A stretch of 64,000 bases of DNA, taken from positions 166,070 through 230,069 of the IMG/VR virus record IMGVR_UViG_3300028840_005860, one strand, 5' to 3'. The position numbers were made by a program, and so were the translations under genes. The notes under the pieces are model-generated. The model searched no databases. It was not told the DNA's origin and was given only the letters and a program-made list of their open reading frames with translations. Positions 25,291-56,383 of this stretch are shown here, piece after piece (positions within the stretch are counted from its first letter, which is position 1; each line of letters opens with the position of its first letter).

Positions 25291-25596
25291 ATGACCGATA
25301 GACCCTCAGCACGTCGAATCGTGATGTCCAAATCGGTGGCCCGGCAGTGGCTCATCAAGCAGGCCCGCCCCGAGTACCGCATCAAGGTGTTCAACCCCAA
25401 CGCCCGAGACTACCCGTCCGTCCTGCGCGCTTTCCGGGACGAGAGGCTGAGGATGGCCGGGGTGTCGCCCCTCCCCGACCTCGGCGTGAGGGAGGACTTC
25501 GGCGGCTTCTACGTCTGGTCGTCCGACCGAGAGGCCCTCGCCACCCTCCAGGGGTGGTTCGAGAAGCGCGGCCTGGAGACCTCCTGGATCTGGTGA
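25291..25596 (+). CDS. Hypothetical protein (late operon)
   Basis: GAGGAGG RBS; carries SVARQWLIKQA. Confidence 0.75.
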   Translation: MTDRPSARRIVMSKSVARQWLIKQARPEYRIKVFNPNARDYPSVLRAFRDERLRMAGVSPLPDLGVREDFGGFYVWSSDREALATLQGWFEKRGLETSWIW

Positions 25597-25597
25597 G

Positions 25598-26041
25598 ATG
25601 GCCGCCGTTCGCACTCGCCTCCAGAGCTGCTTCGTCTACAACGTGCGGATCGATGATCCGTGCAACCCGTCGTGGCAGTTCACCATCATCGTCAACCAGG
25701 ACGGCACGTACGGAGTCGAGAACATCCGCTCACCGAACGGGAGCATCTGCGACCCCAACACCCAGCTCCCGGCGGAGGTCCTCGACGAGATCAACGCCGC
25801 CAAGGGAGACGTGGAGAACATCTTGGCACAGACGAGCGCAGTCAACGGAACCCTGACCTTCACGGCCCAGACCAGTCAGTCGATAGTGTTCGCCACGCCG
25901 TTCGCGAACACGCAGTACAGGGTCTACGTGTCGCTGCCGGACTTCGTCGACTGGAAGATCACCAACAAGACCCTCACCGGCTTCGACCTGGAGATCAATA
26001 CCACCTACACCGGGACGGTCGGCTACGACGTGTTCGTCTAG
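25598..26041 (+). CDS. Putative virion structural protein
   Basis: Thr/Asn/Val-rich beta protein; C-terminal IVFATPF....Y.V...NKTLTGF domain typical of fibre-tip/H-lectin-like modules. Confidence 0.6.
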   Translation: MAAVRTRLQSCFVYNVRIDDPCNPSWQFTIIVNQDGTYGVENIRSPNGSICDPNTQLPAEVLDEINAAKGDVENILAQTSAVNGTLTFTAQTSQSIVFATPFANTQYRVYVSLPDFVDWKITNKTLTGFDLEINTTYTGTVGYDVFV

Positions 26042-26049
26042 GAGGAAGC

Positions 26050-26118
26050 ATGTCTCGTGCCGACGAGAAGGACATGGTGAGCCACGACCCGCCCGAGGTG
26101 CGGCTCTGGTGGGACTAG
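26050..26118 (+). CDS. Micro-ORF, 22 aa (MSRADEKDMVSHDPPEVRLWWD)
   Basis: AGGAGG RBS at canonical spacing; fills the intergenic gap. Confidence 0.5.
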   Translation: MSRADEKDMVSHDPPEVRLWWD

Positions 26119-28323: not shown

Positions 28324-28374
28324 TGCCATCGTCTCGCGGTCTTTGCGCCACGCCTCGAACGAGCCGTGGATTGG

Positions 28375-28389
28375 TGGTTTTCCCTTTAT
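28375..28389 (+). promoter_or_regulatory. Putative late promoter motif
   Basis: TGGTTTTCCCTTTAT, intergenic. Confidence 0.65.
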
Positions 28390-28416
28390 AGGCCCCCGTT
28401 GGCAGGAACTTTCGTC

Positions 28417-36184: not shown

Positions 36185-39100
36185 ATGGCAGCGGAAGGCA
36201 GCAAGAACGCAATCGCGGGATCGGCGTCCCCGTCCTCACAGAGGAAGAACGAGGACGAGCGCGTCGTGGCGGACGTCCCGAACACCCGGCCCGAGCTGCA
36301 CATCGGCAAACCCACCCGCGTCGTCGTCGGATCTATGAGATCGAGGGGCGGCCCTACCAGCTTCCGCGCGAGGGTGGCGAGCTGCGGGCCGGGCACCGGC
36401 AGCTACGGCGGCGTCAGTGCCGGAGGCGGCGGCACCGGCTACGGAGGGTACGGAGGCTTCGGAGGGAACTTCGGAGCCGGAGCCGTCATGCAGGCGAGCT
36501 CCGGAAACTTCTACTCCCCCGAGCTGAGCACCGACTTCCTTGAGCTTCCCCAGTCGCTCAACGAGCAGTGGAACTACTACAGGTTCTTCTACGACAACGA
36601 ACCGTTCGTCGGGCAGGCGCTCGACCTGCACACCGAGCTGCCGCTGTCCAAGGTCCGGCTCGGGCGCCCGAAGGCCAACGACAGGCGGATGGCCGAGGCG
36701 TCTCTGCGGTTCTGCGAGAAGTGGGTGAAGCGCATCGGGCTGCTCCAGCGTCTGCTCGAGATCGTCCACGACTACTTCAAGATCGGAGAGGTCTACATCT
36801 TCTGCGAGGACGCCAACCCGGAGATCCCACAGGACGTCCGGAAGAAGGTCGTGAGGCGCGTCGAGGCGGACGGCACGCTGACGGAGACGTGGGTCGACCG
36901 CGAGGACGCGAACGAGCGCACCGTCAGGTGGATGAAGCAGCACTACAAGGGGTGGACCAGCATCAGGACCGTCCCGCCCGAGCAGATCCACCTCCAGACG
37001 TTCCCGTTCACCGACGAGGTGTTGATCGATCTGATCCCCGACTCGAAGAGCAGGCACCTGCTCGACATGGCCGACCAGGGCGACAAGTACGCCGCGCGCG
37101 TCGTCAAGTCCATGGATCCGGTCGTGGTGGAGGCCCTTCGCAGGGGAGAAAACGTCCCGCTCAGCACCGACCCGGACGGCGGCTCCTTCGTCCACTACAT
37201 GGCGAACAAGAAGTCGCAGTACGAGCCGAGGGGCCACAGCATCCTCCAGCGGTGCCTTCTTCCCGGCACGCTCATAACCGTCCAGCGCAACGGGATCGTG
37301 CGGCAGGTCCCCGTGGAGGACGTCGACACGACTACGGATCTCCTGTTGACCCACAAGGGTCGGTTCCGTCGGGCCACGGCAGGTTCTCGCCCGGTGCGCG
37401 AGAGGGTCGCGGTCCTGCGCATCGAAGGCGTCGAAGACCCCTTGGCCCTCACCACTGACCACGAGGTGCTCCTCGTGCGGGAAGACGGCACCGAGGCGTG
37501 GGTGCCCGCGGGCGAAGTGCGCGAGGGCGACATCGTGCGCGAGAGTCACGTTGTCCCGGAGAACGAGCCCGTCCCTGAGATCGACCTCGCGACGTGGTGG
37601 AGTAATCGGAGGCTCAACGTTGCGCGACGTTTCCGTGAAAACGCGAAGGAAGTCGAAATCCGCAACCGTGAGGTTCGCGTCATCGACGTCGAGGATGGTC
37701 CCGATGGGCTCACCGTCACCTTCGAGCACGACAACGACGACGCGGGTCAGATCGAGGCGACTGAGGGGATGCGTCGGTTCGTGGCATGGCTCAAGAACCT
37801 GGACGCGCCCACGGAGGCCACCTATGACGAGATCGCGGCCGTCACCGGAGTCGACAAGTCGAAACTCAGGAACTACGCGCACCTCCTCCGAAGGGAAGCG
37901 GATCTGCGCACCGAGAGTCGGAGCCTTGGACGGGGTCGAGGTCGTCGCACGACCTGGTGGCCCCTCTCTGGCGACGCGGTCGTCCCGCGAGAGACCCGCT
38001 GCGTCACGATGACGTCCCCCGTCGCCCGGATCGAGGTGGACGAGGGATTCTGTTACCTGCTCGGCACGTGGGTCGGAAACGGCAACATCTGGACCTCGGA
38101 CGAGTTGGTCCTCAATTCTCATTCCGTCGCTTGGACCGCGGGCACCGGCGACCTGGAGCAGGAAATCAAGGCAGAGGAGATGAGGCTCGCCAGTGCCTCC
38201 TTCGGCGACCAGTGCTCGGACGGCCACCTGTTTGGAGAGGAGTCCGGCTCCGACGCGTTCAGGATTGAGGATCCGCTCCTGGCGCGGTGGTTTATGGATG
38301 AGTTCGGGCACTCGGCCCAGAGCAAGCGGATCCCGAGGTGGCTCTTCGACCTCGACGAGGCTCGCGTGTTGGCGTTCCTGCGGGGACTGCTCGACACGGA
38401 CGGGAATCTCCAGGAGAGGACGACACAGACGACCATCAGGTTTGAGATGGATAACCGCGTCCTCCTCGACCAGGTGCATCTCCTCTGCAACAGGCTCGGG
38501 ATAAAGACCCAGGTCAGGAACTATGTGAAACCCGCGCGGTCGTGGACGCGGCGCTGGAAGACCAAGAGGGGTTGGAAAGAGAAGAGTTACCATTACGATG
38601 CCAAGGCGTACGCGACTCTCACGGCGACGCGCCACGCTGACGTGCGTCGTTGGGCCGAGGGGTCCGTCAAGGGATCGAAGGTCGAGTGGCAGGACAAGAC
38701 GCACCCGAACGCCCTGCGTACACAGTTCGTGAACGGATGGCTCACGCGGAGGGTCGAAGGCACCGGTTTGGTGCCATACGAAGGACTCGTGTTCTCGTTC
38801 GATGTCGAGGGAGACGAGTCTCACGTAACACATCAAATGGTGACCCATAACTGCTTGAGAACATTAGTATTTTTTGATAAGTTGAGACAGGCCCAGACCA
38901 GCATCGCCTCCCGGCACATGACGCCGATCCGGCTCGTCTACGCCGAGGACATGGACGAGGAGAACACCGAGGCCCTCCGCGACCAGATCGACCTCGCCCT
39001 CCAGGACCCGGACTACACCATCGTCACCAACTTCCAGGTGACGTGGGAGGAGATGAACTCGAACGGGCGCCTCCTCGAACTCTCGAGCGAGTACGACCTC

Positions 39101-42242: not shown

Positions 42243-43070
42243 GTGGCCGGAAGACCTTGGACGGAAGGAGAGGAGAGGCTTCTTCGCCACTTATGGAAGT
42301 CCGACCTCACGCGGGAGGAGGTCGCGGCACGGTTGCTAGGACGAACGCCGGTCGCCATACAGGTGAGGGCAAAGCGTCTTGGTCTTCGCCATACGGATGA
42401 GCAGTTCCGCCGGATCCTTTCGAAGAAAAGCAAGGGGGAGAACAATGGGATGTTCGGACGTGAGGGGCCGCGCAGAGGTGTAGTGCTCACTGTTACCCAG
42501 CGAGATCTTCTCAGAAAGAAGGCGCTCAACTCCTACAAGAATGGGCGACCCAAGATGGTCGGTGCTCGAAACCCGATGTTTGGTAAGCCGGGCACGATGC
42601 GCGGCAAGAAGTTGCCACCGTCGGCCAAGGCCACCCTCTCCGAGAAAGCCAAAGTCCGTTGGTGTCAGGCATCGGACGAGGAAAAGGCCAAGAAAGTCGC
42701 TCAGCTTCGTGAGGGTCGCGAGCGTCTCGGACGTGACAGCCCCTCATCGATCGAGGTGGCGATGAGGGAATGGTTGTCAGACTTGCAAACTGACTTTGAA
42801 GCACAGGTCGTGATTGGGTTCTACACCGTCGATTTCCTTGTATCGGAGAACAAGGTCATCGAGTGTCACGGCGACTATTGGCACGCGCACCCTGAGAAGT
42901 ACGCGAGCGGCGACCTTGATGAGACGCAACGGCATAATGTTCACCGAGACCGCCGCAAGGCCACTTTTCTCCGAAATCGGGGTTATGGGCTGCTTGTGAT
43001 GTGGGAGAGTGACATCAAGGAGCGTCCTTCGTGGTGCGTCTCGCAAGTGGAGGATTTTCTTCATGGGTGA
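42243..43070 (+). mobile_element. Free-standing homing endonuclease (HTH + NUMOD3 + Vsr/DUF559-like nuclease)
   Basis: WTEGEE..L...GRT..AI..RA..LGL; GENNGMFG and GARNPMFG; SSIE...YTVDF...IECHGDYWH; lower GC; own RBS. Confidence 0.85.
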
Positions 43071-43503
43071 TCCCAGGAAGGCTCTTCAGCAGATGAAGCA
43101 GCTCGGGCTGCTCGAGGTGGTCTCCGAGATGATCAGGTCGAGCAAGCCCTTCTCCGCCTACATGGCGAACCAGCTGCGGACGAACAGGAGGGTCCCCCTC
43201 CTCCTCGACCTCATGGACATGGGGGTCCCCGCGACCACGCCCCTCTCGTTCCTCGACCGCGCGGGACAGCAGCGCGTCCGCGAGGTCACGATGCCGATGA
43301 CAGAGCGCGAGGCCGCGGACTTCGTGAACCTCCTGATCAAGCCGCCCGTGGACAACAGGCGGATCATCGAGGAGCTCGGGCTCCCAGGTCCCGAGCGGCG
43401 CCTCATCCTGCCGATGGCGCGCGACCTGATCCTCAAGAACCCCCCTCTCGCGGCCGACGGGCGCAGGCTGACCGAGGAGGTCCTCCGAGCATGGCCGCGC
43501 TAG
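43063..43503 (+). CDS. C-terminal part of the split CCA-adding enzyme
   Basis: MGDPRKALQQMKQLGLLE matches the helix that follows motif E in class II CCA enzymes; VDNRRIIEELGLPGPE tail motif; GGAGG RBS inside the endonuclease gene. Confidence 0.75.
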   Translation: MGDPRKALQQMKQLGLLEVVSEMIRSSKPFSAYMANQLRTNRRVPLLLDLMDMGVPATTPLSFLDRAGQQRVREVTMPMTEREAADFVNLLIKPPVDNRRIIEELGLPGPERRLILPMARDLILKNPPLAADGRRLTEEVLRAWPR

Positions 43504-46500
43504 CACAGCTGGCCCTCCGCGTCGCCGCGAGGCACCTCGCAGCCGACGCCTACTTCGAGGTCGGCGAGGAGGTGCTGTACGGCAAGTTCAAGAACCGTCG
43601 CGGTCGGGTCGTCAGGATCTTCGACGACGAGCGCGGCGTCCCCTCCGTGGAGATTGAGCCGATCCCGAAGGGCCGCAGGCAGAACAGGATGGTGGGCCTC
43701 TACGGGATCTGGAAGCTGCCCGAGGCGCGGAAGACCGCAGCGATGGACCGCGAGGCCTGCATCATCGCGGGCCGCAAGTTCGGGGACGGCCTGTGCCTCA
43801 TGAAGACCCGCGACCGGGCCTACGATCCGAAGCTCCAGGTGCTCCACGTCGAGCGGGACGGCACCGAGATGGCCGTGGTGTTCGACAAGACCACGGGCTA
43901 CCTGGAGGGCGTCAACGAGCACGGCATCGGCATCGTCAACACGACGCTCATGGTCGTCCGGGACGAGCAGGAGGGCGTCAAGAAGACCAAGGGCGACAAG
44001 CAGAAGGGGCCCAAGAGGTCCAAGGACGGTCCCAAGATCTTCAAGGCGCTCGAGGCCGAGACCCTCGACGACGCCATCCGCTCCCTCGTCTCCTTCCGCG
44101 GCGGCATCAAGGGTCACACGTTCGTGGCGGACGGCGAGCGCATGGTCTGCATCGAGCGCAGCGGCAGGCATCCGGCCAAGATCCACCGCCTCGACCCGAC
44201 GCGCGTGAACACGCGCACCAACCACGGAGTCGCCTACCCCGACGCCGGCTACACCCACGGGGACGACTACGTGTCGTCCATCGTGCGGCGCTGGGAGGCC
44301 CAGAAGCGCCTCCAGAACGTGAACAATCCCGAGGTCGTGGCCCCGGCCCTGGTCCAGGCGATCCACGAGGCCGACAGCCCGTTCAACCCGGTCCGCTGCA
44401 CCGACAAGATGCGGACCACGAGCCAGCTCACCATCGACACGACGAACCCGACGCTCTACCTGTACGTCATCCCCGGGCACGCCGACCTCTCCCCCCCGCG
44501 CAACGTCCTCCCCGACGGCCGACGCCCCAAGATCCCCGTGCGGACCTTCCGCTACCGGCAGAGGATGGAGGACCGCACGGAGCAGCCGGGCCGGAAGACC
44601 GCGCGGGAGGTGCTCGCGCGCTACAAGTCGAAGAAGAAGGTCAGGTCCGAGGACGGCGACGAGACGACCGTCTACGAGTACTCCGAGCGCCAGGTCCAGC
44701 ACCGCAACCGCGAGAAGGCCGAGCGCATCGAGAGGCTCCGTGGATCGATAGGCAAACTCCGCGCGCAGCTCGAGAAGGACATCAGATCCGACGACCCCAA
44801 GAAGCGCGACGTCGCGGCCGCCGTGGGCCTCATGGATCACACGTACGAGCGTCCCGGCAACGACGAGTCGGCGTCCGACGGCCACTATGGCGTGACCAAC
44901 TGGAAGGTGCGGCACGTCAGGTTCGGCGACGGCCAGGCCAAGATCAGCTACGTCGGCAAGTCGGGCGTCAGGCAGCAGAAGTCCGTCACGGACCGAGACC
45001 TCGTGAAGGCGCTCAGGGCCGCCTGCGCCGACAAGGGCGCCGAAGCGACCTGCCTGGACGTGAGCGCCGACGAGGTCAACGAGTACCTCAGGCCCTTCGG
45101 CGTCACGGCGAAGGACCTGCGAGGGCTGCACGCCAACGGGGAGATGAAGGACCGGCTCAGGCGCGTGCGCCGGGAGGGCGGCCCGCTGCCCGAGGACCCG
45201 GAGAAGCGCGAGGAGAAGCTCAGGAAGGAGTTCGACAGGGCCCTGGACGAGGCCGCGGAGACGGTGGGCCACGAGCCTTCGACCCTCAAGAGCCAGTACC
45301 TCGTGCCCGGCCTGGAGGAAGACTACAAGAGGGACGGCACCGTGAGCGAGAGCCACGCCAAGAAGGCGGCCGAGGCCGTGACCGACACGGCGTCCTTCTA
45401 CGTGATCGCGCCCGAGGCGCTCAGGGGCATGCTCGACGACACCGACTGGCTCGAGCTCGCTCACGACCTATGGCCTGGAGAAGGGCGCCCGGGCGGCGAC
45501 GCCGAGGTGCTCGTGCCCGAGATGGAACGCCAGGTCCGCGAGAGCGGTGGCGCCGTGCTCGACACCGGATGGGACGGCGGCTTCGACGTCGGCGTGAGGG
45601 GCAAGTACGACGAGCTGGGCCGGATCGAGCCCTTCGACCTGCCCGTTCGCGAGAAGGGCGCGGTGCCTCCCTACGGGTTGCGCAAGAGCGCGTCGCTGCT
45701 GCGCGTCGCCGCCGAGGAGGGGACCTCGGCCGAGCGCAGGATCCTCGCCAACGCCCTGGTGGCCCCCGTGCTCGTGGCCCGGACGCGCGAGTGGTGGCTC
45801 CGCGAGGCGCCCCACCTGTACCGGATTGCTCGCGATCACGAGAAGCCTCGACCTCGCATCGAGGGCCTCGAGTTTCCGTCCAATCTTTTCACGATCCTAT
45901 GGTACGAAGACGCGGACGGGAACGACCTGGGAGACGGGGACCTTGAAGGAGAGCCGGGCGCGCCAGAAGGAGCACAGTACCAGCACAGCCAGTTCCCGCA
46001 CGTCCTGCACCACAACGTCCTGCGCCTCAACGACGACGGAACCTCCACGGACCTCGGCGGCGGCGAGGCGTCCTACCCGGAAGACCTCGTGAACGCGATG
46101 GTTCGCAGCGGGGACTGGGACGTGGGCGACGCGATCATGGTCGCCGCCCAGTCGTGCGAGCGGTGCCTGAACGTCCTGTGCCACCATTACGACCTGGACG
46201 ACGGCTACCCGTTCGGGTCCGAGGAGTACTGGAGCGCTGGCACCCGTTGTCCGATGTGCGAGAACGTGCATGCTCCCGCTCGCACGGCCGCGACGCCGAA
46301 CTACGAGGCGTACGTCGAGCGCAAGAGGCGGGAGGGAGAACCCCCGCTCGACCGCGAGCGGTGGGAGCGCAGGGTCCTGGGCGTGCGCGACGAAGAGGGT
46401 CCGCGCGACTGGGACGCGCACCGCAGAGACGTGATGCGGCGTCACGAGCTGGACAAGCTGCACGCGCCCTACGATCCCGAGAACAAGCACCTGCGCATCG

Positions 46501-49500
46501 ACCTGATCAGCGTCCGAAGGGACGCGCGCGGAGAGGGTCACGCCCGACGGGCGATGGAGGAGATCCTCGGATGGGCGGACCGGGCCGGAGCGACCGTCAC
46601 GCTGACGCCGACCTCCGAGTTCGGCGCGTCCAAGAAGCGCCTGACGCGGTGGTACGAGGGCATGGGGTTCGTCCCGAACAAGGGCAGGAACAAGGATTTT
46701 CGGTTTCAGGACGCGATGATCCGCGCCCCCCAAGTCAAGACCGCCACGAAGTCCGACGCCGAGCTCGACGAAGAGGCGGTCGAGGAGATGCTCCGCGAGG
46801 AGCCCAAGAAGAAGCCGCCTCGCTACGATCTGCGGGACAACCGACCCTTGGAGGACGACGACGAGGAGGACCTCGAGGGCCTCGGCGGCGGGGACCGGGG
46901 CGACCGGGACCTGAGCCTCAAGTGGAACAAGGTCGGCAGGCGCGTGGCGTTTCGCTGGCTGGCGACTCCCGGAAGGCTCTCGGCGGTCAGGACCGCCATG
47001 CGTCATCGGGCGAAGGTCACGCCCGACTCCGAGTTCCAGAAGGAGATCGCGGACAAGAAGTTCAGGCACCCGGAGACGGGCAACGAGGTCGCGTTCGGCT
47101 CCCTGCCGACCGAGGAACAGCACCGGATTTTCGAGGAGTGGAAGAAGAAGCACGCGCCGAAGGGGGAACCGGCCGAGGGCAAAGAGAAACCCAAGGAGGA
47201 GCCCGAGGGTCGGTCGCCCGAGGAGATCGACCAGGACATCTCCGAGGCCCGCGAGGCGGCCAAGAAGTTGAAGGGCGAGATCCGCGACCTGAAGGAGAAG
47301 ATTGGCGACGCGAAGAAGGCCATCGAGGACTGGACCGAGCTCACGAAGGGAGAGGTCGGCGAGGAGATGAGGAAGAAGGGCGACGCCGTCATCAAGGAGA
47401 TGAAGCGCATCGTCCTGGATGCCGAGGACGACATCGAGTACAAGACCCAGGACCTCAAGGACGCGCGCAGACGCGTCCAGGAGCTGAAGGAGGAGCGCGA
47501 GGACCCGACCGGAGCTAAGGCGAAGAAGGAGCAGGAGGAGAGGGAGCAGAAGGAGAAGCGGACGCGGCAGGCCGTCAAGGACACGGTCGCGGCGATGGAG
47601 AAGATGCTCGGCAGGGGGTCGAGGCTGCCGCAGGGGACGAGGCAGGAGATCGAGAGTGCGCTGGGCGACTTCGACTACCCCCAGCTCGAGGCGTTCGCGC
47701 TGGCGTTTCAGGGCGAGCTCAAGGACCTCAGCGGACAGGACCCGACGTCGCCCGACGTGATCTCCATGGCGAACCGGCAGGCGAAGATCGGCTTCGACGT
47801 GGAGGGTGTCACGGATCCCGAGGAGCTGGCGAGGCGTGCCGCGGAGGTCGGCTACGTGACGAACGTGGTCGCCAACCCGATGGTCGTGGGAGGCAGGCCC
47901 GTCGGGCAGACGGAGATGGACGACGCGGCACGGTCGGCGCGGGCGAGGGAGGCGTTCGCCCAGTTCGAGAATCTCCACCCGAAGCTGCAGCGCATGGCGG
48001 CGGAGCGCATCCGCGAGGAGCTAAGGGGCCTCGACGAGGACACCGACCGCGCCGTGGAGCTCGAGTCGATCCTCAGCGCCGTCGACCTGGCGCACGTGGG
48101 CCAGACCGGAGAGGCCCTCCCCGGACGCCCGCAGCCGAGCGCCGGCAACGCCGCGCTGATCAAGCGCATGATCGCGGACGGCAACGCCGACAGGATGTTC
48201 CAGACGAAGAAGGACTTCTTCTCGGAGGGATCGCGGGAGGCGATGGCGCAGGCGCTCGAGGAGATGGACGACGCCGACGTGGCCAATTTCATCACGGGCG
48301 ACGACCCGAGCCACCCGTTCTACGAGCTCTCCCAGAGCATGAGGACCGAGGGCGCGGGCGAGTTCAACCAGATGATCAAGGACTTCCTGATCAAGGACTT
48401 CCTGAACGACACGTGGGGCGACCGGGCCGCGCGCGACGTGATGGAGGCCGCGGGCGTCGAGGACTGGGACAGCCCGGAGGCGCGGGCCGAGCTGCTCGAG
48501 GAGTCCAAGCGAGCCGGCGAGACGCCCCTGGGTCAGGTGCTGGAGGCGAAGGAGCGTGTCGAGGCGGCGCGGGCCGCGGGCGAGGAACCCAGCCAGGACG
48601 ACCTGGACCTCGTGAGTTCGTACTTCGAGCCCGAGGCCGGCGAGGGGGTCGTCGGCAATGCCAGGGCCCTCCTCGGCCTCCTGAGGGACAAGTTCAAGAA
48701 GCACGTGATCTCGCCCGCCGTGGCCGTGCTCAACCACTTCGTGAAGACGCGGGATCCGAAGGTACTCAGCCAGGAGACGTTGCCGCACCCGGACGAGAGA
48801 TCCCCTGAGCCGAGACCCAAGGAGGAGCGCGAGAAGGCGCGGGTCGAGATGCCCACCGAGGCAGAGGCGCCCGAGAGCAAGCCTGGTAAGCCCGAGGTCG
48901 TGGCTCCCGAGTGGGCCGCGGAAGGACGCAAACCGGCCGAGGACCTGACCCCTGAGAAGGCGATGCGCAGGCGCATCGTCCTGAAGAGCGAGCGCCAGAA
49001 GCTAGAGGCCCAGCGAGAGAAGGCGCCGCCCGAGGAGCGCGGCAAGTACGACGTCAAGATCAGGAAGCTGGACAAGGAACTCGAGAGAGCCAGCGTTCCG
49101 AAGAGACCGGAGAAGAAGGCCCCTGAGCCGGAGAAGAAGGCCCCTGAGCCGGAGAAGGTGAAGGAGCCTGAGGTGGTGCGGAAGCGTCGCAAGCAGCTCG
49201 AGAAGGTGAAGTCCGTGCGCGACGAGGCCAGGGCGGCGCTGAAGGAGATGGAGCCCGCGGCCCGGAAACAGCTCGAACAGAAGCTCGAGAAGATGGACGC
49301 CGCCATCAGGCAGGTCGAGGAGCAGCACGCCGAGGACGAGAAGCACGGCCCCGGGGACGTCTGGAAGACCAAGGGAGGAAACTGGCGCGCCAAGAACGAG
49401 GAGGGTCTCTCCAGGAGTTTCAAGAAGAGGGACGAGGCCGAGACGTACGCGAGAGGGGAGCCCGAAAAGGAGTGGAGCGCCGAGTTCAAGGCAGTCTCGC

Positions 49501-49625
49501 CCGAGGAGGCCTGGCGCGGGCCGACGCGCTTCGCGGGGAACGTGACCGACGCGTGGCTCGCCCGCATCCGAAGCATCCATCCCGACGATCCCGACCGCCC
49601 CGTCATCGTGCTCGACGCGGCCTGA
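43491..49625 (+). CDS. 2044-aa polyprotein-like head protein: SH3-like, Ntn hydrolase, DNA topoisomerase IB, GNAT, coiled-coil domains
   Basis: CIIAG...KTRD...EGVNEHG...RTNHG (Ntn); ERPGN, VGKSG, KDLRG, VGHEP..LKSQY (Topo IB R-K-R-H-Y); ISVRRDARGEGHARRAM...WYEGMGF (GNAT). Confidence 0.85.
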   Translation: MAALAQLALRVAARHLAADAYFEVGEEVLYGKFKNRRGRVVRIFDDERGVPSVEIEPIPKGRRQNRMVGLYGIWKLPEARKTAAMDREACIIAGRKFGDGLCLMKTRDRAYDPKLQVLHVERDGTEMAVVFDKTTGYLEGVNEHGIGIVNTTLMVVRDEQEGVKKTKGDKQKGPKRSKDGPKIFKALEAETLDDAIRSLVSFRGGIKGHTFVADGERMVCIERSGRHPAKIHRLDPTRVNTRTNHGVAYPDAGYTHGDDYVSSIVRRWEAQKRLQNVNNPEVVAPALVQAIHEADSPFNPVRCTDKMRTTSQLTIDTTNPTLYLYVIPGHADLSPPRNVLPDGRRPKIPVRTFRYRQRMEDRTEQPGRKTAREVLARYKSKKKVRSEDGDETTVYEYSERQVQHRNREKAERIERLRGSIGKLRAQLEKDIRSDDPKKRDVAAAVGLMDHTYERPGNDESASDGHYGVTNWKVRHVRFGDGQAKISYVGKSGVRQQKSVTDRDLVKALRAACADKGAEATCLDVSADEVNEYLRPFGVTAKDLRGLHANGEMKDRLRRVRREGGPLPEDPEKREEKLRKEFDRALDEAAETVGHEPSTLKSQYLVPGLEEDYKRDGTVSESHAKKAAEAVTDTASFYVIAPEALRGMLDDTDWLELAHDLWPGEGRPGGDAEVLVPEMERQVRESGGAVLDTGWDGGFDVGVRGKYDELGRIEPFDLPVREKGAVPPYGLRKSASLLRVAAEEGTSAERRILANALVAPVLVARTREWWLREAPHLYRIARDHEKPRPRIEGLEFPSNLFTILWYEDADGNDLGDGDLEGEPGAPEGAQYQHSQFPHVLHHNVLRLNDDGTSTDLGGGEASYPEDLVNAMVRSGDWDVGDAIMVAAQSCERCLNVLCHHYDLDDGYPFGSEEYWSAGTRCPMCENVHAPARTAATPNYEAYVERKRREGEPPLDRERWERRVLGVRDEEGPRDWDAHRRDVMRRHELDKLHAPYDPENKHLRIDLISVRRDARGEGHARRAMEEILGWADRAGATVTLTPTSEFGASKKRLTRWYEGMGFVPNKGRNKDFRFQDAMIRAPQVKTATKSDAELDEEAVEEMLREEPKKKPPRYDLRDNRPLEDDDEEDLEGLGGGDRGDRDLSLKWNKVGRRVAFRWLATPGRLSAVRTAMRHRAKVTPDSEFQKEIADKKFRHPETGNEVAFGSLPTEEQHRIFEEWKKKHAPKGEPAEGKEKPKEEPEGRSPEEIDQDISEAREAAKKLKGEIRDLKEKIGDAKKAIEDWTELTKGEVGEEMRKKGDAVIKEMKRIVLDAEDDIEYKTQDLKDARRRVQELKEEREDPTGAKAKKEQEEREQKEKRTRQAVKDTVAAMEKMLGRGSRLPQGTRQEIESALGDFDYPQLEAFALAFQGELKDLSGQDPTSPDVISMANRQAKIGFDVEGVTDPEELARRAAEVGYVTNVVANPMVVGGRPVGQTEMDDAARSARAREAFAQFENLHPKLQRMAAERIREELRGLDEDTDRAVELESILSAVDLAHVGQTGEALPGRPQPSAGNAALIKRMIADGNADRMFQTKKDFFSEGSREAMAQALEEMDDADVANFITGDDPSHPFYELSQSMRTEGAGEFNQMIKDFLIKDFLNDTWGDRAARDVMEAAGVEDWDSPEARAELLEESKRAGETPLGQVLEAKERVEAARAAGEEPSQDDLDLVSSYFEPEAGEGVVGNARALLGLLRDKFKKHVISPAVAVLNHFVKTRDPKVLSQETLPHPDERSPEPRPKEEREKARVEMPTEAEAPESKPGKPEVVAPEWAAEGRKPAEDLTPEKAMRRRIVLKSERQKLEAQREKAPPEERGKYDVKIRKLDKELERASVPKRPEKKAPEPEKKAPEPEKVKEPEVVRKRRKQLEKVKSVRDEARAALKEMEPAARKQLEQKLEKMDAAIRQVEEQHAEDEKHGPGDVWKTKGGNWRAKNEEGLSRSFKKRDEAETYARGEPEKEWSAEFKAVSPEEAWRGPTRFAGNVTDAWLARIRSIHPDDPDRPVIVLDAA

Positions 49626-49857
49626 CCGTAGTTTCAGGGAACGAAAACCACCCTGAAAACCCGGAGGGCCGGTTTCTTCTCGACGCTGGGTAGGCAAACC
49701 ACCCTCGGAGCCCGCACTAGGGAGGTTTTTCCTACCTGCGAGTCAGGGTTTCAAGGTTCGTCGGGGGTTTGGTGCGCGCTACCGCTCCTCGGGAACTTCA
49801 AGGAGCGGAGGAGGGGATCTGTGAGTGACCTTGCGCCCCCTGAAACCCGGTTTGTGT

Positions 49858-49872
49858 CGATTTTCCTCTTAT
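49858..49872 (+). promoter_or_regulatory. Putative late promoter motif
   Basis: CGATTTTCCTCTTAT upstream of the protease/scaffold/capsid operon. Confidence 0.65.
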
Positions 49873-49952
49873 ATGGGTCGCCAGATAGGACAAGGGGCCC
49901 CCCTCTGGCGAGGGCGTCGCATGGCCCTGCTGCAGTCCTCAGGAGAACTTCG

Positions 49953-50456
49953 ATGCCGAAAAAGCTCAGCAAGCAAGGTGCCATGCAGGTCACGACCGAC
50001 CTGGATCGAATCGCGTCCCTCTTCGAGCAGGAGCACGAGACGCTCGGGATCTCCGACAAGATCGCCGGCGACTTCGCGCTTCGCTGCGACATCCTCTCGA
50101 CCGCGGTGGAGAAGACCGCGGGCATCGAGCGCACCCCTGAGGGGAAGCTCAAGGACCCCGAGCTCCTCAAGCTCGCGCAGATGGACCCGACCCAGAACTA
50201 CACGGAGACCAAGGTCAAGCCGAACGAGTTCGATCCCTCCGAGATCGCCAAGGAGACCCCGGCCGCGCTCCTGCGGAACACCGACGAGCCGTACATGGAC
50301 GTCTTCCGTCAGGACGAGTACGACCAGCTCCGCGAGGTCCAGCAGACGGGCATGTTCTCGAACGCCAAGACGGCCGCCGTCCTCGTGAAGAAGATGGCCG
50401 CCCTGCTGGCTCAGAACAACGTGCCCCTTCCCGTCGCACGTCAGCAGGCCGAGTAA
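49953..50456 (+). CDS. Putative head/core protein
   Basis: AGGAG RBS before ATG 49953, downstream of a late-type promoter motif; KTAG and KTAA motifs. Confidence 0.7.
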   Translation: MPKKLSKQGAMQVTTDLDRIASLFEQEHETLGISDKIAGDFALRCDILSTAVEKTAGIERTPEGKLKDPELLKLAQMDPTQNYTETKVKPNEFDPSEIAKETPAALLRNTDEPYMDVFRQDEYDQLREVQQTGMFSNAKTAAVLVKKMAALLAQNNVPLPVARQQAE

Positions 50457-52062: not shown

Positions 52063-54843
52063 GTGGCGTTCCTGAAGACCGCGCGCGCGGGCATCATCCA
52101 CCGGGACTGGTCCCCCGAGAACTGGGGCAACTGGGTCGGACGACACCGCGACACCATCGCCAACGGCCCCTACCGGACGGCGTCGAGCTCCCCGAACCTC
52201 ATCGCCCAGGCCTCGGAGATCCTCAAGGAGGACTTCGACCCGAGGAACTACCTGCTGACCCACGCGACGATAGTCGCCTCCGTAGACACGGAGGACGTGC
52301 CGAACGTGAAGCTCGGCACCGTCACCGAGCTCGGGAGGAAGATCGACCGGCGCTGGCCGAACTACCACATCACGCCCGAGACCGAGCGCTGGACCAACAA
52401 CAACGGCGACTCCTGGGACCGTCCCGTGCTCCTCAAGAGCTACCGGACCTTCGTCGGATCGCACAACTGGGTCGAGCACGTCCAGGTCGAGGAGCAGTCG
52501 AAGGGCCGCATCATCGACGCCGTCGCGCGCGACATCGGCCCCTCCATCTACGTCGACATCCTGACGGCCACCAACCGGAGGCATGCCAGCCTGATCCGCG
52601 ACATCGAGAGCGGACGCCTGAACACGCTGTCCATGGGCTGCTTCCTTGCCGGCACCCAGGTCACGATGGCCGACGGGACTCGCGTCGCCATCGAGGACGT
52701 GGTGCCCGGCGACATGGTCCTCACCCACAGGGGACGTGCTCGTGAGGTGGTCAACAAGCAGATCCGAACTTACCGGGGGCCCTTGCGCCGTATCAAGGCC
52801 GTCGGCGTGTCCTCCACCATCCGAGCGACGGCGAATCACGGGTTCCACGTCCTGCGTGCCGCGAAAACCTGCGCCTGTGGCTGTGGCGAGGCTCTGCCGA
52901 CGACGAGCACCCTGACGCGCCGCATGACCCGGCGGTTCAAGCACGGACACGACAAGCGCATCTACAACCCGAACAACACCTACTCTCTGGAAGAGGCGCG
53001 CCGTCGCGAGGAACGGGTTCGATCTCTCAAGGAGTTCACCTTCGAGAAGATTCGTGCGGACGAGCTCGAGATCGGGGACTTCCTCGCCTTCCCGCGCCCC
53101 GCCGAGGGCGTCTCCGAGGGTTGGACTTCCGGCAAGGCGCGCCTCGTCGGCTACTTCTTGGCCGAGGGCTCGTATCTGAAGCACCGGGGTAGGCCCGTCG
53201 AGGTGCAGTTCAGTTTCTCCATGTCGGAGAGGGACACGTACGTCCGGGAGGTGGTCGATCTTCTTCGGCAGGAGTTCCCGTCGGCCAACGATCCCTGGGT
53301 GCAGGAGCGACCGACGAGGGGTGGCTGTGTCGTTCACATGACGGGCCCTGAGGCGGTCGAGTGGTTCTACCGGCATTGCGGCGAGTACAGCCACGGCAAG
53401 CGCATGAGCGCCGAGACCATGTCGCTGCCTGTCGAGCTACATAGGCATCTCGTGGGTGCGTGGATCAACGGCGACGGGACGTTCGGCGAGGCGAACAAGA
53501 CCCTCTCCGGCACGAGCGTGTCTTACGACCTCGCCTGTCAGATGCACTACCTCCTCGCTCGGTGCGGAGTCTTCGCGCGCATGGGGTGCGACCAGGAAGG
53601 TCGCAGCATCGAGGTCTCGGAGGCCATCGGTGCCGGATGGTTGCCCGACCCGGAGACCAGAAAGCGACCCGCGCTCACGTTGGTCATGGGACTCACGGGG
53701 CAGCAGCCCCTCGCGGGATTCTCCGACAAGGTCGGCAGGAACTCGCAGGCCGAGCAACAGCTTCGAGTGCTCGACGACTACGTGATCTTCCCGATCACCT
53801 CGATCGAATCCGAGTGGTACGAAGGGCCCGTTCACAACATGGAGGTGGAGGAGGACCACACCTACGTTGTGGAGGGCGTGACGGTTTACAACTGCTCGGT
53901 CACCGAGACGCAGTGCACCAAGTGCGGAAACGTCGCGGCCGACGAGACGGAGATGTGCCCGTGCGTCAAGTACGAGAAGCACAACGTCTTCTTCGACTCT
54001 CGCGGGGTCCGTCGCAAGGTCGCCGAACTCTGCGGCCACCACTCGCTCGACCCGACCGGCGGCGTGAACTTCATCGAGGCGTCCTGGGTCGCCGTCCCGG
54101 CCTTCGCCGGGGCCGTCACCCGCAACATCCTCCAGCCCGAGACCATCAGCGTCCAGACGACCGAGAAGATGCGGAGCGTCCTCGCGTCGCCGCCGCCCGA
54201 GTGGGTCGAGGGCGCCATTCCGAAGGCCGCGTCCTTCGAGAGTCCCAGCGTGTCGCCGCGCACCGACGTGACCACCCTGGAGGGGCGCGTCGCCCAGATG
54301 CCGGCCGCTCCCGAACCCGCGCCGGGCGGCATGCCCGGGATGCCGGGCGGCATGCCCGGGATGCCGGGGATGCCCGGCGCCGAGGAGAAGGACCCGCTCG
54401 AGGAGCTCGAGGACGAGGTCGAGAAGTTCGTCGTTGACAAGGTGAAGAAGAAGCTGCGCAAGAAGCTGCGCGAGGAGGTCGCCGAGAAGGCGGTCTCCGA
54501 GCCCGAGCTCGGCGCCTCCACCAACGAGAACGTCAACCACCAGGCGTCGGACCGCAGGATCGCCGCGCTCGTCAGCGGCACCTCGGCCCTGCTGAGGATC
54601 GCCCGCTCGGACGTCGAGCTGCTCGACGGCGTGGCCAGGCTCAGCGACGACCTGGGAGTCGAAGTTTCGAGGGACCTCTACCGCGCGGCCCTCCGCGTCG
54701 GGTCTACGGAAGGCCACCCGTCCCTCGATAGGTACCTCTCGCGTGCTGCGGAGGTACTCGGCCGCAAACCGACAACGGGAGAAGCCAAGACCCTGGTGCG
54801 TCTTGGGCGGATCCTTTCACTGCGAAAGAAGACCCGGTTCTAG
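52063..54843 (+). CDS. Prohead maturation protease (assemblin/HK97-type serine protease), intein-containing
   Basis: NNNGD, VEH (candidate catalytic His), LSMG|C (candidate catalytic Ser), CTKCG, FIEASWVAVPAF.GA; sits upstream of the scaffold and capsid genes. Confidence 0.8.
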   Translation: MAFLKTARAGIIHRDWSPENWGNWVGRHRDTIANGPYRTASSSPNLIAQASEILKEDFDPRNYLLTHATIVASVDTEDVPNVKLGTVTELGRKIDRRWPNYHITPETERWTNNNGDSWDRPVLLKSYRTFVGSHNWVEHVQVEEQSKGRIIDAVARDIGPSIYVDILTATNRRHASLIRDIESGRLNTLSMGCFLAGTQVTMADGTRVAIEDVVPGDMVLTHRGRAREVVNKQIRTYRGPLRRIKAVGVSSTIRATANHGFHVLRAAKTCACGCGEALPTTSTLTRRMTRRFKHGHDKRIYNPNNTYSLEEARRREERVRSLKEFTFEKIRADELEIGDFLAFPRPAEGVSEGWTSGKARLVGYFLAEGSYLKHRGRPVEVQFSFSMSERDTYVREVVDLLRQEFPSANDPWVQERPTRGGCVVHMTGPEAVEWFYRHCGEYSHGKRMSAETMSLPVELHRHLVGAWINGDGTFGEANKTLSGTSVSYDLACQMHYLLARCGVFARMGCDQEGRSIEVSEAIGAGWLPDPETRKRPALTLVMGLTGQQPLAGFSDKVGRNSQAEQQLRVLDDYVIFPITSIESEWYEGPVHNMEVEEDHTYVVEGVTVYNCSVTETQCTKCGNVAADETEMCPCVKYEKHNVFFDSRGVRRKVAELCGHHSLDPTGGVNFIEASWVAVPAFAGAVTRNILQPETISVQTTEKMRSVLASPPPEWVEGAIPKAASFESPSVSPRTDVTTLEGRVAQMPAAPEPAPGGMPGMPGGMPGMPGMPGAEEKDPLEELEDEVEKFVVDKVKKKLRKKLREEVAEKAVSEPELGASTNENVNHQASDRRIAALVSGTSALLRIARSDVELLDGVARLSDDLGVEVSRDLYRAALRVGSTEGHPSLDRYLSRAAEVLGRKPTTGEAKTLVRLGRILSLRKKTRF
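52639..53892 (+). mobile_element. Intein with LAGLIDADG endonuclease (418 aa)
   Basis: G|CFLAGTQVTMADG...ATANHGF...VGYFLAEG...AWINGDG...VTVYN|C. Confidence 0.93.
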
Positions 54844-54874
54844 CCAACCGAGACCACCGAGGAGAGGTAATCAC

Positions 54875-56383
54875 ATGCAGCGTCAACGACGTACCTGGAC
54901 GAAGAAGGCCGAGCAGGACAAGACGGCTTCCCCGCCGCCTCAGATGCCGGCCGTGGACCGTACCGAGGGGCCCGACCACCCCGCGTACCACGCGGACCCC
55001 GACGCCGACCAGTACAAGTCGGGCGACACCAGCTCGTGGGCCGAGGACCCCCACAAGCCGATGAGCCCGGAGTCCCCGCCCCCGGCAATGCCGGGCAACC
55101 TGACCACCGACGAGCTCGACCACCCGGGCACCTCGGACTTCCAGAAGACGCCCGAGAGCCCCGAGAAGGCCGAGGCGGCCGGAGGCGGCGGCAAGCAGGC
55201 GTCCAAGGAGCCGACGCTCCGCCAGCTCGCCGAGCAGCGCGCGACGCTCTGCGTCCGCATCGCCAGCGCCCTCATGCCGCAGGCCGACGTCAAGACCGTC
55301 GAGAACAAGGCCCTCGAGCTGATGGACCTCGACGACGCGCAGCTGCGGGCCACCGCCAGCACCCTCAAGATCGTCGCTGGCGAGGAGGAGGAGGAGGAGG
55401 TCGAAAAGGAGATGGAGACCGAGGCCGGCAAGAAGGCCAACGTCGAGGTCGTCGCCCGCGTCGAGAGGCTCGAGGGCGCCGTCGGCAAGCTCGTCAAGGC
55501 GATGAGCCACTTCTTCGGCCAGGAGGGCGACGAGTCCGACACGGACGGGATGTCCGACAGGGAGCTCCTCGCGTACCTGACGGCCGAGGACACGGACGGC
55601 GACGGCATCGACCAGAGCAAGAACGACTACCCGCAGGGGTACGACGTCGAGAAGATGGGCCAGGAGGAGGACGAGGAGGAGATGCTCAAGGCGATGCTCG
55701 AGGAGATGGACGAGGAGATGGCCGTCACCGCGGCCACCAAGGAGGAGGAGGTCACCGAGCCGCTCGCCAAGGGCGAGAGCATTCAGTCGGGCGAGGGCGG
55801 CAACGTCAACCCCGACGAGAAGGCCGAGACCCCTCAGGTCGAGCAGAGCGACGGCTCCGAGAAGACCGCCCAGGACGACGAGGCGAAGGAGAAGCCGAAG
55901 GAGTTCATCGAGGGCGAGGAGTCCGAGGGCACCAAGGAGTCCGACGAGGGCGAGAAGGAGGGCGCCTGCAAGAAGAAGGCGGAGGACGAGGAGACCCCCA
56001 AGGCGGCCGAGAACGACATCGACATCACCGCGGGCGTCGATCCGATGGGCCTGATGGAGGAGACGAGGGAGGCGTCGGCCGACGACGAGCTGATGCAGCT
56101 GTACGCCGACCTCGACCTGCCGAAGACCGTGGGCGAGGAGCCCGAGGAGGAGGCCCCCGTCGAGGAGGTCGTCGAGGAGACCGTCGAGGAGGAGAAGGAG
56201 GCTGGCAAGAAGAAGGCGGCCGACGAGCCCGAGCTCAAGCCGCAGGCCAAGGTCGCCAGCTCCGGCGCCAAGACCATCGGCAACGTCGCCCTCAGCAAGG
56301 AGGCTCGCGACGAGATCAGCGAGCTCGAGAAGATGTGGGAGCACGCTCCTAGCGTCAACAAGGTCTTCGGACTCCCCGAGTAG
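54875..56383 (+). CDS. Capsid scaffolding protein
   Basis: Highly acidic and disordered; lies between the protease and capsid genes; C-terminal LEKMW...PSVNKVFG. Confidence 0.7.
   Translation: MQRQRRTWTKKAEQDKTASPPPQMPAVDRTEGPDHPAYHADPDADQYKSGDTSSWAEDPHKPMSPESPPPAMPGNLTTDELDHPGTSDFQKTPESPEKAEAAGGGGKQASKEPTLRQLAEQRATLCVRIASALMPQADVKTVENKALELMDLDDAQLRATASTLKIVAGEEEEEEVEKEMETEAGKKANVEVVARVERLEGAVGKLVKAMSHFFGQEGDESDTDGMSDRELLAYLTAEDTDGDGIDQSKNDYPQGYDVEKMGQEEDEEEMLKAMLEEMDEEMAVTAATKEEEVTEPLAKGESIQSGEGGNVNPDEKAETPQVEQSDGSEKTAQDDEAKEKPKEFIEGEESEGTKESDEGEKEGACKKKAEDEETPKAAENDIDITAGVDPMGLMEETREASADDELMQLYADLDLPKTVGEEPEEEAPVEEVVEETVEEEKEAGKKKAADEPELKPQAKVASSGAKTIGNVALSKEARDEISELEKMWEHAPSVNKVFGLPE

Follow-up and report, generated by a model that had tools for sequence, protein, structure and literature searches.

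The window analysed here, a 64,000-nucleotide stretch, is the end of a 230-kb phage from a cosmopolitan clade of very large phages related to Bacillus phage G. Its positions 25291-56383 hold 22 genes of a head module, and the features on which the analysis below relies, including two just outside these limits, are the following.

36185..39634 (+), portal protein carrying a LAGLIDADG intein (residues 357-889, nt 37253-38851)
39676..42240 (+), 854-aa protein: N-terminal Cys-rich region, 2H phosphoesterase, unknown module, then the head domain of a CCA-adding nucleotidyltransferase
42243..43070 (+), free-standing HNH/DUF559-type endonuclease ORF with lower third-position GC, between the two pieces of the CCA-adding enzyme
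43093..43503 (+), 136-aa ORF
43491..49625 (+), 2044-aa polyvalent protein anchored on topoisomerase IB (the giant protein): N-terminal box and small beta domain, Ntn hydrolase, Topo IB, two unknown domains, GNAT, a conserved peptide, then a long charged C-terminal region
43518..43526 (+), R-V-A of the N-terminal RVAARY box, giant residues 10-12
43749..43760 (+), R-E-A-C, giant residues 87-90, the R-E-A lying directly before the Cys that starts the Ntn-hydrolase fold
44595..44603 (+), K-T-A followed by R, giant residues 369-371, in the linker before Topo IB
44619..45353 (+), topoisomerase IB domain, giant residues 377-621, the invariant core of the family
45360..45371 (+), K-K-A-A, giant residues 624-627, directly after Topo IB
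45684..45710 (+), K-S-A followed by S and R-V-A followed by A, giant residues 732-740, at the boundary to the next conserved domain
46281..46289 (+), R-T-A followed by A, giant residues 931-933, in the linker before the GNAT domain
46737..46745 (+), K-T-A followed by T, giant residues 1083-1085, opening a strongly conserved peptide (T-K-T ... P-K-K-K-P-P-R-x-D-L-R)
46941..46949 (+), R-V-A followed by F, giant residues 1151-1153, a second box that closes the conserved peptide
49821..50456 (+), small head-module protein (211 aa) with 6 sites
52063..54843 (+), predicted prohead serine protease (926 aa) interrupted by an intein, with exteins at 52063-52638 and 53893-54843: catalytic domain, acidic Pro/Gly/Met linker, then a conserved C-terminal helical domain
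52075..52083 (+), K-T-A, protease residues 5-7
52174..52182 (+), R-T-A followed by S, protease residues 38-40, ahead of the catalytic domain
52639..53892 (+), intein (residues 193-610, Hint plus LAGLIDADG), inserted between LSMG and C beside the putative catalytic Ser190
54223..54231 (+), K-A-A followed by S, protease residues 721-723, immediately after the catalytic domain
54875..56383 (+), acidic scaffolding protein (502 aa) with 14 [KR]-x-A sites
56504-57232, decoration-like protein
57248..58126 (+), major capsid protein (MCP, 292 aa), outside the first reading's limits but in the same module

A megablast search of 16 kb against GenBank phages returned nothing, and relatives were therefore reached through the capsid protein (phrog_2522, E 7e-50), related copies of which were found on 573 IMG/VR contigs, the best 80 of them 89-98% identical. 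The order portal, giant protein, small proteins, protease, scaffold, decoration protein, MCP holds in the window and in over 20 relatives spanning 33-65% GC. The portal was assigned by phrog_16240 and Pfam LAGLIDADG_3, and the relative examined lacks the insert; likewise, the protease intein is supported by Pfam Hom_end_hint, Hint_2, LAGLIDADG_3 and Intein_splicing and is absent from relatives.

A sequence-only reading of the window had reported a basic-x-Ala tripeptide, mostly followed by A, S, G, E or D, in the scaffold, the protease and most neighbouring genes, and at domain boundaries of the two largest proteins. Every tetrapeptide it listed is present: in the scaffold KKAE10, KTAS16, KQAS107, KKAN186, KTAQ330, KKAE367, REAS398, KKAA446 and KVAS459, plus five more; in the protease KTAR5, RTAS38, KAAS721 and RVAQ742; in the giant protein KTAA81, REAC87, KTAR369, KKAA624, KSAS732, RTAA931 and KTAT1083; and in the 854-aa protein RRAS57, KTAG131, KTAK206, KIAG406 and RVAS604. 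As had been suggested, we compared the motif's frequency with shuffled backgrounds. In the 22 genes of 25291-56383, [KR]xA occurs 166 times against about 127 expected (z 3.8), and [KR]xA[ASGED] 86 times against about 50 (z 5.0-5.5) under both whole-protein and 20-residue local shuffles, while the other 300 genes give 693 against 650-659 and 241 against 241-244, respectively. KTA is the second most enriched tripeptide of the region, at 11 against 2.2, compared to 13 against 10.7 in the rest of the genome, and genes in the region rank higher for excess than the remainder (Mann-Whitney p 0.0035). Within this one genome, however, no single protein is individually significant, the giant protein is not enriched overall (39 against 35 expected), and several genes of the region (25598, 26139, 32145, 32789 and TerL) show no excess, so that the attribution of the motif to most neighbours was an overstatement. 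The result was replicated in the orthologous module of LR745208 (54% GC, proteins 35-65% identical; longest ORFs matched by BLAST), which gives 54 against 30, whereas its other ORFs give 17 against 17. The observation itself is confirmed, and it extends well beyond the window.

In 35 scaffold homologues, an unbiased scan of 337 spaced residue pairs ranks K-x-A first (445 against 192), R-x-A second (241 against 99) and H-x-A fourth, indicating that His also serves as the basic residue, a feature absent from the initial description. There are about 22 sites per protein, and 35 of 35 homologues are enriched (median 2.35-fold) in low-GC and high-GC genomes alike, although the family z-scores are inflated because the sequences are related. 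Across 789 scaffold sites Ser is 3.6-fold over-represented just after the Ala and Gly 2-fold just before the basic residue (P4), and thirteen alignment positions carry the motif in at least 60% of sequences. In the family of the small protein at 49821..50456, K-x-A is again the top pair (108 against 43.5) and 13 of 13 members are enriched. Among distant cultured relatives, K-x-A is the top pair in the Tunturi_5 scaffold-like gp332, in its gp328 ('DNA ejection protein') and in the phage G protease gp19. These data lead us to reject chance, or a by-product of composition, codon usage or helical periodicity. Single proteins of this genome are indeed not significant and the motif was chosen after the sequence had been seen, but two shuffling schemes, a same-genome control and a second genome agree, the unbiased pair scans put K-x-A and R-x-A first, the signal holds from 33% to 65% GC, and an i to i+2 spacing with flanking Gly and Ser is not a helical pattern.

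In the protease, conserved sites flank the catalytic domain. A [KR]-x-A at residues 5-7 is conserved in 21 of 22 aligned homologues, including phage G and Tunturi_5, and lies in a low-pLDDT segment (1-16) of the model of a relative's protein; residues 38-40 form a conserved R-x-A-[SA] site whose equivalent segment (21-30) is also of low pLDDT; and the Lys of the site at 721-723 (K292 of the alignment) is invariant in 17 clade sequences and opens the disordered segment 287-341. The predicted fold, assigned with moderate confidence, best matches T4 gp21 and, second, VZV protease in a PDB scan, and a search of BFVD returned prohead proteases. His139 (in V-E-H-V-Q) and Ser190 (in L-S-M-G-C) are invariant in 17 homologues, an observation from alignment alone, without structural superposition on the gp21 catalytic residues.

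The giant protein belongs to a family of 152 homologues of 1100-3300 aa that share Topo IB plus variable enzyme domains, including CCA transferase, 2H, HAD_SAK_1, RNA ligase, PAP2, NUDIX, ART-PolyVal, InPase, ParB and SOD. Its Topo IB domain was identified by Pfam (Topoisom_I, E 1e-24) and by a structural match of the AlphaFold model to variola topoisomerase (Foldseek, E 4e-13), with an occupancy of 1.0 in the family alignment, while the Ntn fold matches isopenicillin N acyltransferase, penicillin V acylase and bile salt hydrolase. No peptidase family was found in the window protein by Pfam at E <= 0.01, none stands out in the precomputed Pfam lists of homologues, and no portal-binding or MuF-type domain was detected. 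A search of the ESM Atlas with the C-terminal half gave only sub-threshold leads to LPD34 and DarA_N. The 854-aa protein, annotated with Pfam and PHROGs, is a split-off part of the same polyvalent protein: its 2H and CCA modules are fused to Topo IB in relatives, and homology breakpoints at 200-213, 398-406 and 604-615 coincide with its sites K-T-A 206, K-I-A 406 and R-V-A 604 at the module starts. In BLASTP against 30 giant homologues, the segment corresponding to the 136-aa ORF directly follows the CCA head domain inside the giant proteins, and in some relatives the 49821 module is fused to the C-terminal part of the giant. A group I intron was considered around the HNH ORF that splits the CCA enzyme, but an Rfam search found none.

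We mapped the motif onto domain boundaries of the giant protein, defined either by AlphaFold confidence or by presence and absence of modules in homologues. Of 19 sites in residues 1-1200, 12 lie in low-pLDDT segments, mostly interdomain linkers, against 25% expected (p 4.7e-4), whereas six control motifs are flat; every interdomain linker carries a site, and all six module boundaries do so, mostly with 67-97% conservation. The R-V-A at residues 10-12 is conserved in 84% of aligned homologues. The R-E-A-C site (consensus K-x-A-C-I-I-A, 85% conserved) marks the end of low-pLDDT linker 78-87, with a strand beginning at residue 91. K-T-A 369-371 falls in low-pLDDT linker 361-378, and in 47 of 69 homologues (68%) the Ala of a [KRH]-x-A lies 1-3 residues before the Topo IB start, where chance gives 5%. 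K-K-A-A 624-627 (97% conserved) starts low-pLDDT linker 625-633. The pair at 732-740 lies by linker 712-733, where homologue occupancy jumps, and its R-V-A is 80% conserved. R-T-A 931-933 lies in low-pLDDT segment 929-936, ahead of a GNAT module that is lineage-specific. K-T-A 1083-1085 (67% conserved) lies in low-pLDDT segment 1082-1088; in relatives the peptide that it opens follows Topo IB directly and a basic-x-Ala/Gly is kept. The R-V-A at 1151-1153 is 97% conserved and nearly invariant. The motif is not enriched throughout the giant proteins, contrary to the initial impression, and only a few conserved sites at module junctions matter. An apparent K-x-A depletion in the giant family (ratio 0.82; median ratio 0.81) was considered as evidence of protease-site avoidance and dropped, since large control proteins of the same genome have a similar median (0.85).

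Many junctions carry a longer conserved box, R-V-A-A-R-Y, that the sequence-only reading did not see. It occurs 112 times against 1.5 expected in 120 giant homologues, where it sits at residues 6-15 of many, and 31 times against 1.2 expected in relatives' module proteins, with eight of those 31 within 25 residues of a C-terminus, against 8.7% expected. Conservation extends three residues past the Ala, beyond a minimal cut site, and AF2 predicts helix for two copies, which fits a docking element as well as a cut site. An alternative is therefore that the tripeptide and the box are short docking motifs for the capsid interior, the scaffold or the portal, acting as a cargo-loading peptide like those of encapsulins, and the exceptional conservation of the capsid protein would be expected of a hub with many partners. 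We consider this unlikely, as about 22 copies per scaffold, with only 3-4 conserved residues and a Gly/Ser context, look like cut sites rather than docking sites, and as sites flank the protease's own catalytic domain; docking and cleavage are also not exclusive, the T4 capsid-targeting peptide doing both.

A second alternative, somewhat less improbable but still unlikely in our view, is that the motif is the protease site for the scaffold and for self-processing only, the giant enzymes being ordinary late cytoplasmic proteins (an RNA-repair kit plus Topo IB) neither packaged nor cut by the head protease, and their junction box a conserved module-start helix or a joint left by gene fusion and fission. 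In its favor, the enrichment is carried mainly by the scaffold, the protease and the 49821 family, with K-x-A at 1.14-fold and R-x-A at 1.30-fold in the rest of the module once scaffold and protease are removed; the giants are not enriched overall and lack a detected portal-binding or MuF-type domain; and the box often follows a Met (M-A-E-R-V-A-A-R-Y), as if it were a former protein start. On the other hand, the gene is fixed between portal and protease across 33-65% GC, sites but not control motifs are over-represented in linkers, the K-x-A-rich 49821 module is fused to giants in some relatives, the R-E-A-C site precedes an Ntn nucleophile, and where the window lost the R-V-A of the box it carries a K-T-A four residues upstream.

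Our preferred model, to which we assign a probability of about 0.6, is that [KRH]-x-A, often followed by Ser, is the recognition site of this clade's prohead serine protease, which matures by intein splicing. Inside the assembled prohead the protease would trim itself on either side of its catalytic domain, chop the acidic scaffold into short peptides, and cut the interdomain linkers of the Topo IB-anchored polyvalent protein, in this phage split into 39676-42240, 43093-43503, 43491-49625 and 49821-50456. This would release an Ntn hydrolase (whose N-terminal Cys nucleophile would be exposed by the cut), topoisomerase IB, GNAT, a 2H phosphoesterase and a CCA-adding enzyme as separate proteins that stay in the head and enter the host with the DNA. 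The analysis establishes the motif statistics, positional conservation, linker location, modular and split architecture and head-module synteny and, with moderate confidence, the protease fold, whereas cleavage at the motif or of any head protein by this protease, packaging of the polyvalent protein and ejection are inferred, only synteny and the shared motif speaking for packaging and delivery to the host; a literature search for cleavage or virion data on phage G, Tunturi_5, PaBG or mycobacteriophage relatives found none. Furthermore, the residue after the Ala at the giant's junctions is variable (A, C, T, F, R), unlike the Ser bias in scaffolds. The earlier proposal that unrelated enzymes are loaded into the prohead as polyproteins and released by the phage protease for ejection is thus supported only in part, and the loading of multi-enzyme proteins into heads is already described for polyvalent proteins (PMC5512222).

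If correct, the model provides a concrete cleavage code for the prohead protease of a very widespread, almost uncultured group of huge phages, making the mature virion proteome predictable from sequence, a prediction directly testable in existing cultured phages with existing mass-spectrometry methods. It also proposes how polyvalent proteins lacking their own peptidase are split into working enzymes, and suggests that these phages deliver a topoisomerase and RNA-repair enzymes together with their DNA, which would be a new kind of pre-loaded counter-defence. More tentatively, and somewhat less likely than not, head maturation in this clade of jumbo and megaphages may double as an enzyme-activation step, where one assemblin-like protease would use a single short code, with an R-V-A-A-R-Y joint at module starts, both to dismantle the scaffold and to convert a rapidly shuffling polyvalent precursor into free enzymes ready for injection. 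These would be a topoisomerase IB plus an RNA-repair kit (2H phosphoesterase, CCA-adding enzyme and, in relatives, HAD phosphatase and RNA ligase), the cut would also unmask the Ntn nucleophile, and the shared joint would make new enzyme modules plug-and-play.

The closest known systems share parts of this arrangement. In T4, the gp21 prohead serine protease recognizes a short motif that recurs in the scaffold core and in internal proteins (IPI-III, Alt) that are packaged, trimmed and then injected with the DNA (PMC9026906), but T4 cuts after [LI]-x-Glu, and its cargo proteins are single proteins with an N-terminal targeting peptide, whereas here the motif is basic-x-Ala and the putative cargo a multi-enzyme precursor with sites at internal linkers. 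In the giant phages phiKZ and SPN3US, gp175 and gp245, respectively, process inner-body and ejection proteins, many internal proteins, including enzymes, being cut at a three-residue motif (A-x-E in SPN3US; PMC10052503); the specificity differs, there is no detectable sequence relationship, and substrates there lose N-terminal propeptides, while here the sites separate whole enzyme domains. In line with both distinctions, no [LISAG]-x-E pair is among the listed top pairs of our head-module scans. Herpesvirus assemblin sites ([VL]-x-A before Ser) share Ala before the cut and, here as a sequence preference only, Ser after it, and the protease is joined by a release-type site to a C-terminal scaffold-like domain; however, the position two residues before the Ala is Lys, Arg or His here and aliphatic in herpesviruses, whose scaffolds have one or two sites, not about twenty. 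The DarA/DarB/DdrB antirestriction proteins of phage P1 are large enzymes that are proteolytically processed and carried in the head for injection (as summarised in PMC5512222), with different enzymes and genome context, and with no homology detected apart from the weak, non-significant, feature-based lead to DarA_N. Finally, the polyvalent proteins of phages and conjugative elements (Iyer et al. 2017, PMC5512222) similarly combine many unrelated enzyme domains in one polypeptide, encoded among virion genes and hypervariable in composition, and homologues of the giant protein carry catalogued domains such as 2H, ART-PolyVal, InPase and ParB. A Topo IB anchor with RNA-repair modules was not noted there, in a text with a single hit for 'topoisomerase', and those proteins were proposed to be processed by their own zincin-like metallopeptidase domain; none is detected here, and a motif shared with the scaffold points to the prohead protease instead.

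A GC3 frame analysis combined with Pfam and PHROGs searches resolved, in the last 64 kb of the 230,069-bp IMG/VR phage record (about 65% GC), a collinear plus-strand module with the following features:

33489-35390 (+), large terminase
36185-39634 (+), portal with a LAGLIDADG intein
39676-42240 (+), an 854-aa protein with a 2H phosphoesterase and a CCA-adding nucleotidyltransferase head domain
42243-43070 (+), an HNH/DUF559 endonuclease
43093-43503 (+), a 136-aa ORF
43491-49625 (+), a 2044-aa protein with a weak Ntn (AAT) hit, topoisomerase IB and GNAT
three small ORFs (+)
52063-54843 (+), a 926-aa protein with an intein and a weak head-maturation-protease hit
54875-56383 (+), an acidic 502-aa protein
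56504-57232 (+), a decoration-like protein
57248-58126 (+), the major capsid protein

The two inteins sit in head-assembly genes, one in the portal (residues 357-889, 37253-38851) and the other in the prohead protease (residues 193-610, 52639-53892), where it is placed right beside the putative catalytic Ser. Within the same stretch, a ferritin/Dps-like protein with weak Pfam and PHROG hits (31601-32140) is encoded inside the block upstream of the terminase, and an acidic 309-aa protein (50482-51411), which matched no protein family, carries three copies of an H-G-Y-[DR]-L-[TD]-A peptide, one of them at its C-terminus. Just after the capsid gene, a 1010-aa ORF (58404-61436) features a LAGLIDADG-like motif, a possible methyltransferase motif and many Cys-x-x-Cys pairs, and has a 1229-aa homologue in the related uncultured phage LR745208.

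To evaluate the recurrence of a basic-x-Ala tripeptide noted in the sequence-only reading, we first confirmed that all of the tetrapeptides listed there are present, and then called 324 genes across the whole genome and shuffled residues both within proteins and within 20-residue blocks. The 22 genes of the flagged region hold 166 [KR]-x-A against about 127 expected (z 3.8) and 86 [KR]-x-A-[ASGED] against about 50 (z 5.0-5.5), whereas the other 300 genes hold 241 of the latter against 241-244. K-T-A is the second most enriched tripeptide of the region, at 11 against 2.2. No single protein is individually significant and the 2044-aa giant itself is not enriched (39 against 35 expected), but the region's genes rank higher than the rest (p 0.0035). 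The observation holds, and as shown below it extends to a whole clade. Outside the window, about 13-15 kb upstream (window coordinates -14909..-12980), two adjacent proteins of 338 and 303 aa are among the most [KRH]-x-A-rich in the genome and one carries an R-V-A-A-R-H box; they may be further substrates or virion proteins.

Searches with the capsid protein identified a 485-kb uncultured phage (LR745208, 90% identical) and, more distantly, Tunturiibacter phage Tunturi_5, Bacillus phage G and cluster C mycobacteriophages. IMG/VR holds 573 related contigs, of which the best 80 have capsid proteins 89-98% identical at 33-65% GC, and the gene order portal, Topo IB giant, small proteins, protease, scaffold, decoration, capsid is conserved in over 20 of them. 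In the same genomes the scaffold is about 39% identical and the protease about 50%, indicating unusually strong constraint for a phage capsid protein. The capsid protein of the window also features a K-L-A|A near the end of its N-terminal arm (57323-57331, residues 26-28), and if the motif is a cut site about 28 residues could be removed. LR745208 is syntenic across the whole flagged region but lacks both inteins, the 854-aa protein and the HNH ORF; its orthologous module repeats the enrichment (54 against 30, z 4.3-4.9), while its other ORFs give 17 against 17.

To gain further insights at the family level, we scanned all spaced residue pairs without bias. In 35 dereplicated scaffold homologues K-x-A ranks first of 337 pairs (445 against 192), R-x-A second (241 against 99) and H-x-A fourth, and all 35 are enriched, with a median of 2.35-fold and similar values in low-GC and high-GC genomes. 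There are about 22 sites per scaffold, with Ser 3.6-fold over-represented after the Ala, Lys 3-fold between the basic residue and the Ala, and Gly 2-fold before the basic residue; Gly and Ser flanks with an i to i+2 spacing argue against a helical-repeat origin. Moreover, thirteen alignment positions keep the motif in 60-100% of sequences, although the scaffolds are only about 39% identical. The family of the small head-module protein encoded at 49821 is also led by K-x-A (108 against 43.5; 13 of 13 enriched), and the protease family is enriched in 29 of 29 members, with a median of 1.8. Once scaffold and protease are removed, however, the module is only mildly enriched (K-x-A 1.14-fold and R-x-A 1.30-fold). 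Among distant kin, K-x-A is the top pair in Tunturi_5 gp332 and gp328 and in the phage G protease gp19.

An alignment of 22 protease homologues shows three conserved sites. The first, at residues 5-7 (M-A-F-L-[KR]-x-A), is kept in all but one of the 22 aligned sequences, including phage G and Tunturi_5; the second is an R-x-A-[SA] site about 30 residues in; and the third is K-A-A directly after the catalytic domain, with the Lys invariant in the 17 clade sequences of alignment A1, followed by an acidic linker and a conserved helical C-terminal domain.

A search of 5.8 billion proteins returned 152 homologues of the giant protein, of 1100-3300 aa, all with Topo IB joined to a changing set of domains: CCA transferase, several 2H families, HAD_SAK_1, RNA ligase, PAP2, NUDIX, GGACT, ART-PolyVal, InPase, ParB, SOD, GNAT, AAT and DUF5661. 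This matches the "polyvalent proteins" of Iyer et al. (PMC5512222). Several separate proteins of the window occur fused inside these giants, namely the 2H and CCA modules of the 854-aa protein, the 136-aa ORF, the 49821 protein and the DUF5661 end of the protein at 28366-29358, and the window therefore carries a split version of the gene. In many Topo IB giants the DUF5661 domain ends exactly where Topo IB starts (…K-I-E-K-H-G-A|R-Y-K-S-K-K), and in the window the 28366 protein, of which it is the C-terminal domain, stops at that same point. The HNH/DUF559 ORF (42243-43070), which has lower third-position GC, lies between the head and body parts of the CCA-adding enzyme (39676-42240 and 43093-43503), which are contiguous in relatives; an Rfam search for a group I intron in this gene-in-pieces arrangement found none.

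We next examined where the sites fall in the giant. An AF2 model of residues 1-1200, built with 38 homologues, gives pLDDT 73, and Foldseek confirms variola-type Topo IB (E 4e-13), an Ntn hydrolase like isopenicillin N acyltransferase (E 6e-7) and a GNAT. Twelve of the 19 [KR]-x-A sites lie in low-confidence segments, against 25% expected (p 4.7e-4), while six control motifs are flat, as are K/R alone and Ala alone. In addition, each of six module boundaries, defined separately from which homologues have which segment, carries a site within a few residues.

Conservation of basic-x-Ala sites of the giant protein in homologues (site, residue, conserved in):
R-V-A, residue 10, 84%
R-E-A|C, residue 87, 85%
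K-K-A-A, residue 624, 97%
R-V-A, residue 738, 80%
K-T-A|T, residue 1083, 67%
R-V-A, residue 1151, 97%

R-E-A|C lies directly before the Cys that starts the Ntn fold, where the family consensus is K-x-A-C-I-I-A. Before Topo IB, the Ala of a basic-x-Ala lies 1-3 residues upstream of the domain start in 47 of 69 homologues, where chance gives 5%, and this holds even when Topo IB is at the very N-terminus behind a short leader; the window lost the usual R-V-A at this junction but has K-T-A four residues upstream. A nearly invariant peptide (T-K-T..E.E-D-E ... P-K-K-K-P-P-R-x-D-L-R; 46746-46844, giant residues 1086-1118), which follows Topo IB directly in most relatives, is bracketed by K-T-A and a second R-V-A box. 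In the 854-aa protein, the three homology breakpoints (about 206, 400 and 604) each coincide with a site.

Many junctions carry a longer box that the sequence-only reading had missed, [KRH]-[VIL]-A-[ASG]-[RK]-[YFHW], typically R-V-A-A-R-Y. It occurs 31 times against 1.2 expected in relatives' module proteins and 112 times against 1.5 expected in 120 giant homologues, and it sits at residues 6-15 of many giants, immediately before Topo IB, and at C-terminal tails (8 of 31 within 25 residues of the end). The box may combine a docking function with the putative cut site, and it is mainly for this reason that we retain docking as an alternative explanation.

Overall, the proposal that basic-x-Ala sites serve to release enzymes loaded into the prohead is plausible and partly supported. 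The enrichment of the motif, its conservation and its placement at module boundaries are established here by sequence and model analysis, whereas cleavage, packaging and ejection are inferred, none having been observed for any member, and the giants are not enriched overall. A depletion of K-x-A, which we first considered as evidence of site avoidance, is matched by control proteins and was set aside. As phage G and Tunturi_5 are cultured, the prediction is open to direct testing. The simplest account is that basic-x-Ala is the cleavage motif of an assemblin-like prohead protease, which would trim itself, destroy the scaffold and cut the linkers of a packaged polyvalent precursor. Such a mechanism would work like T4 gp21 with its internal proteins and like the phiKZ/SPN3US proteases with their ejection proteins (PMC10052503), but with a different motif, one that resembles the herpesvirus Ala|Ser sites.
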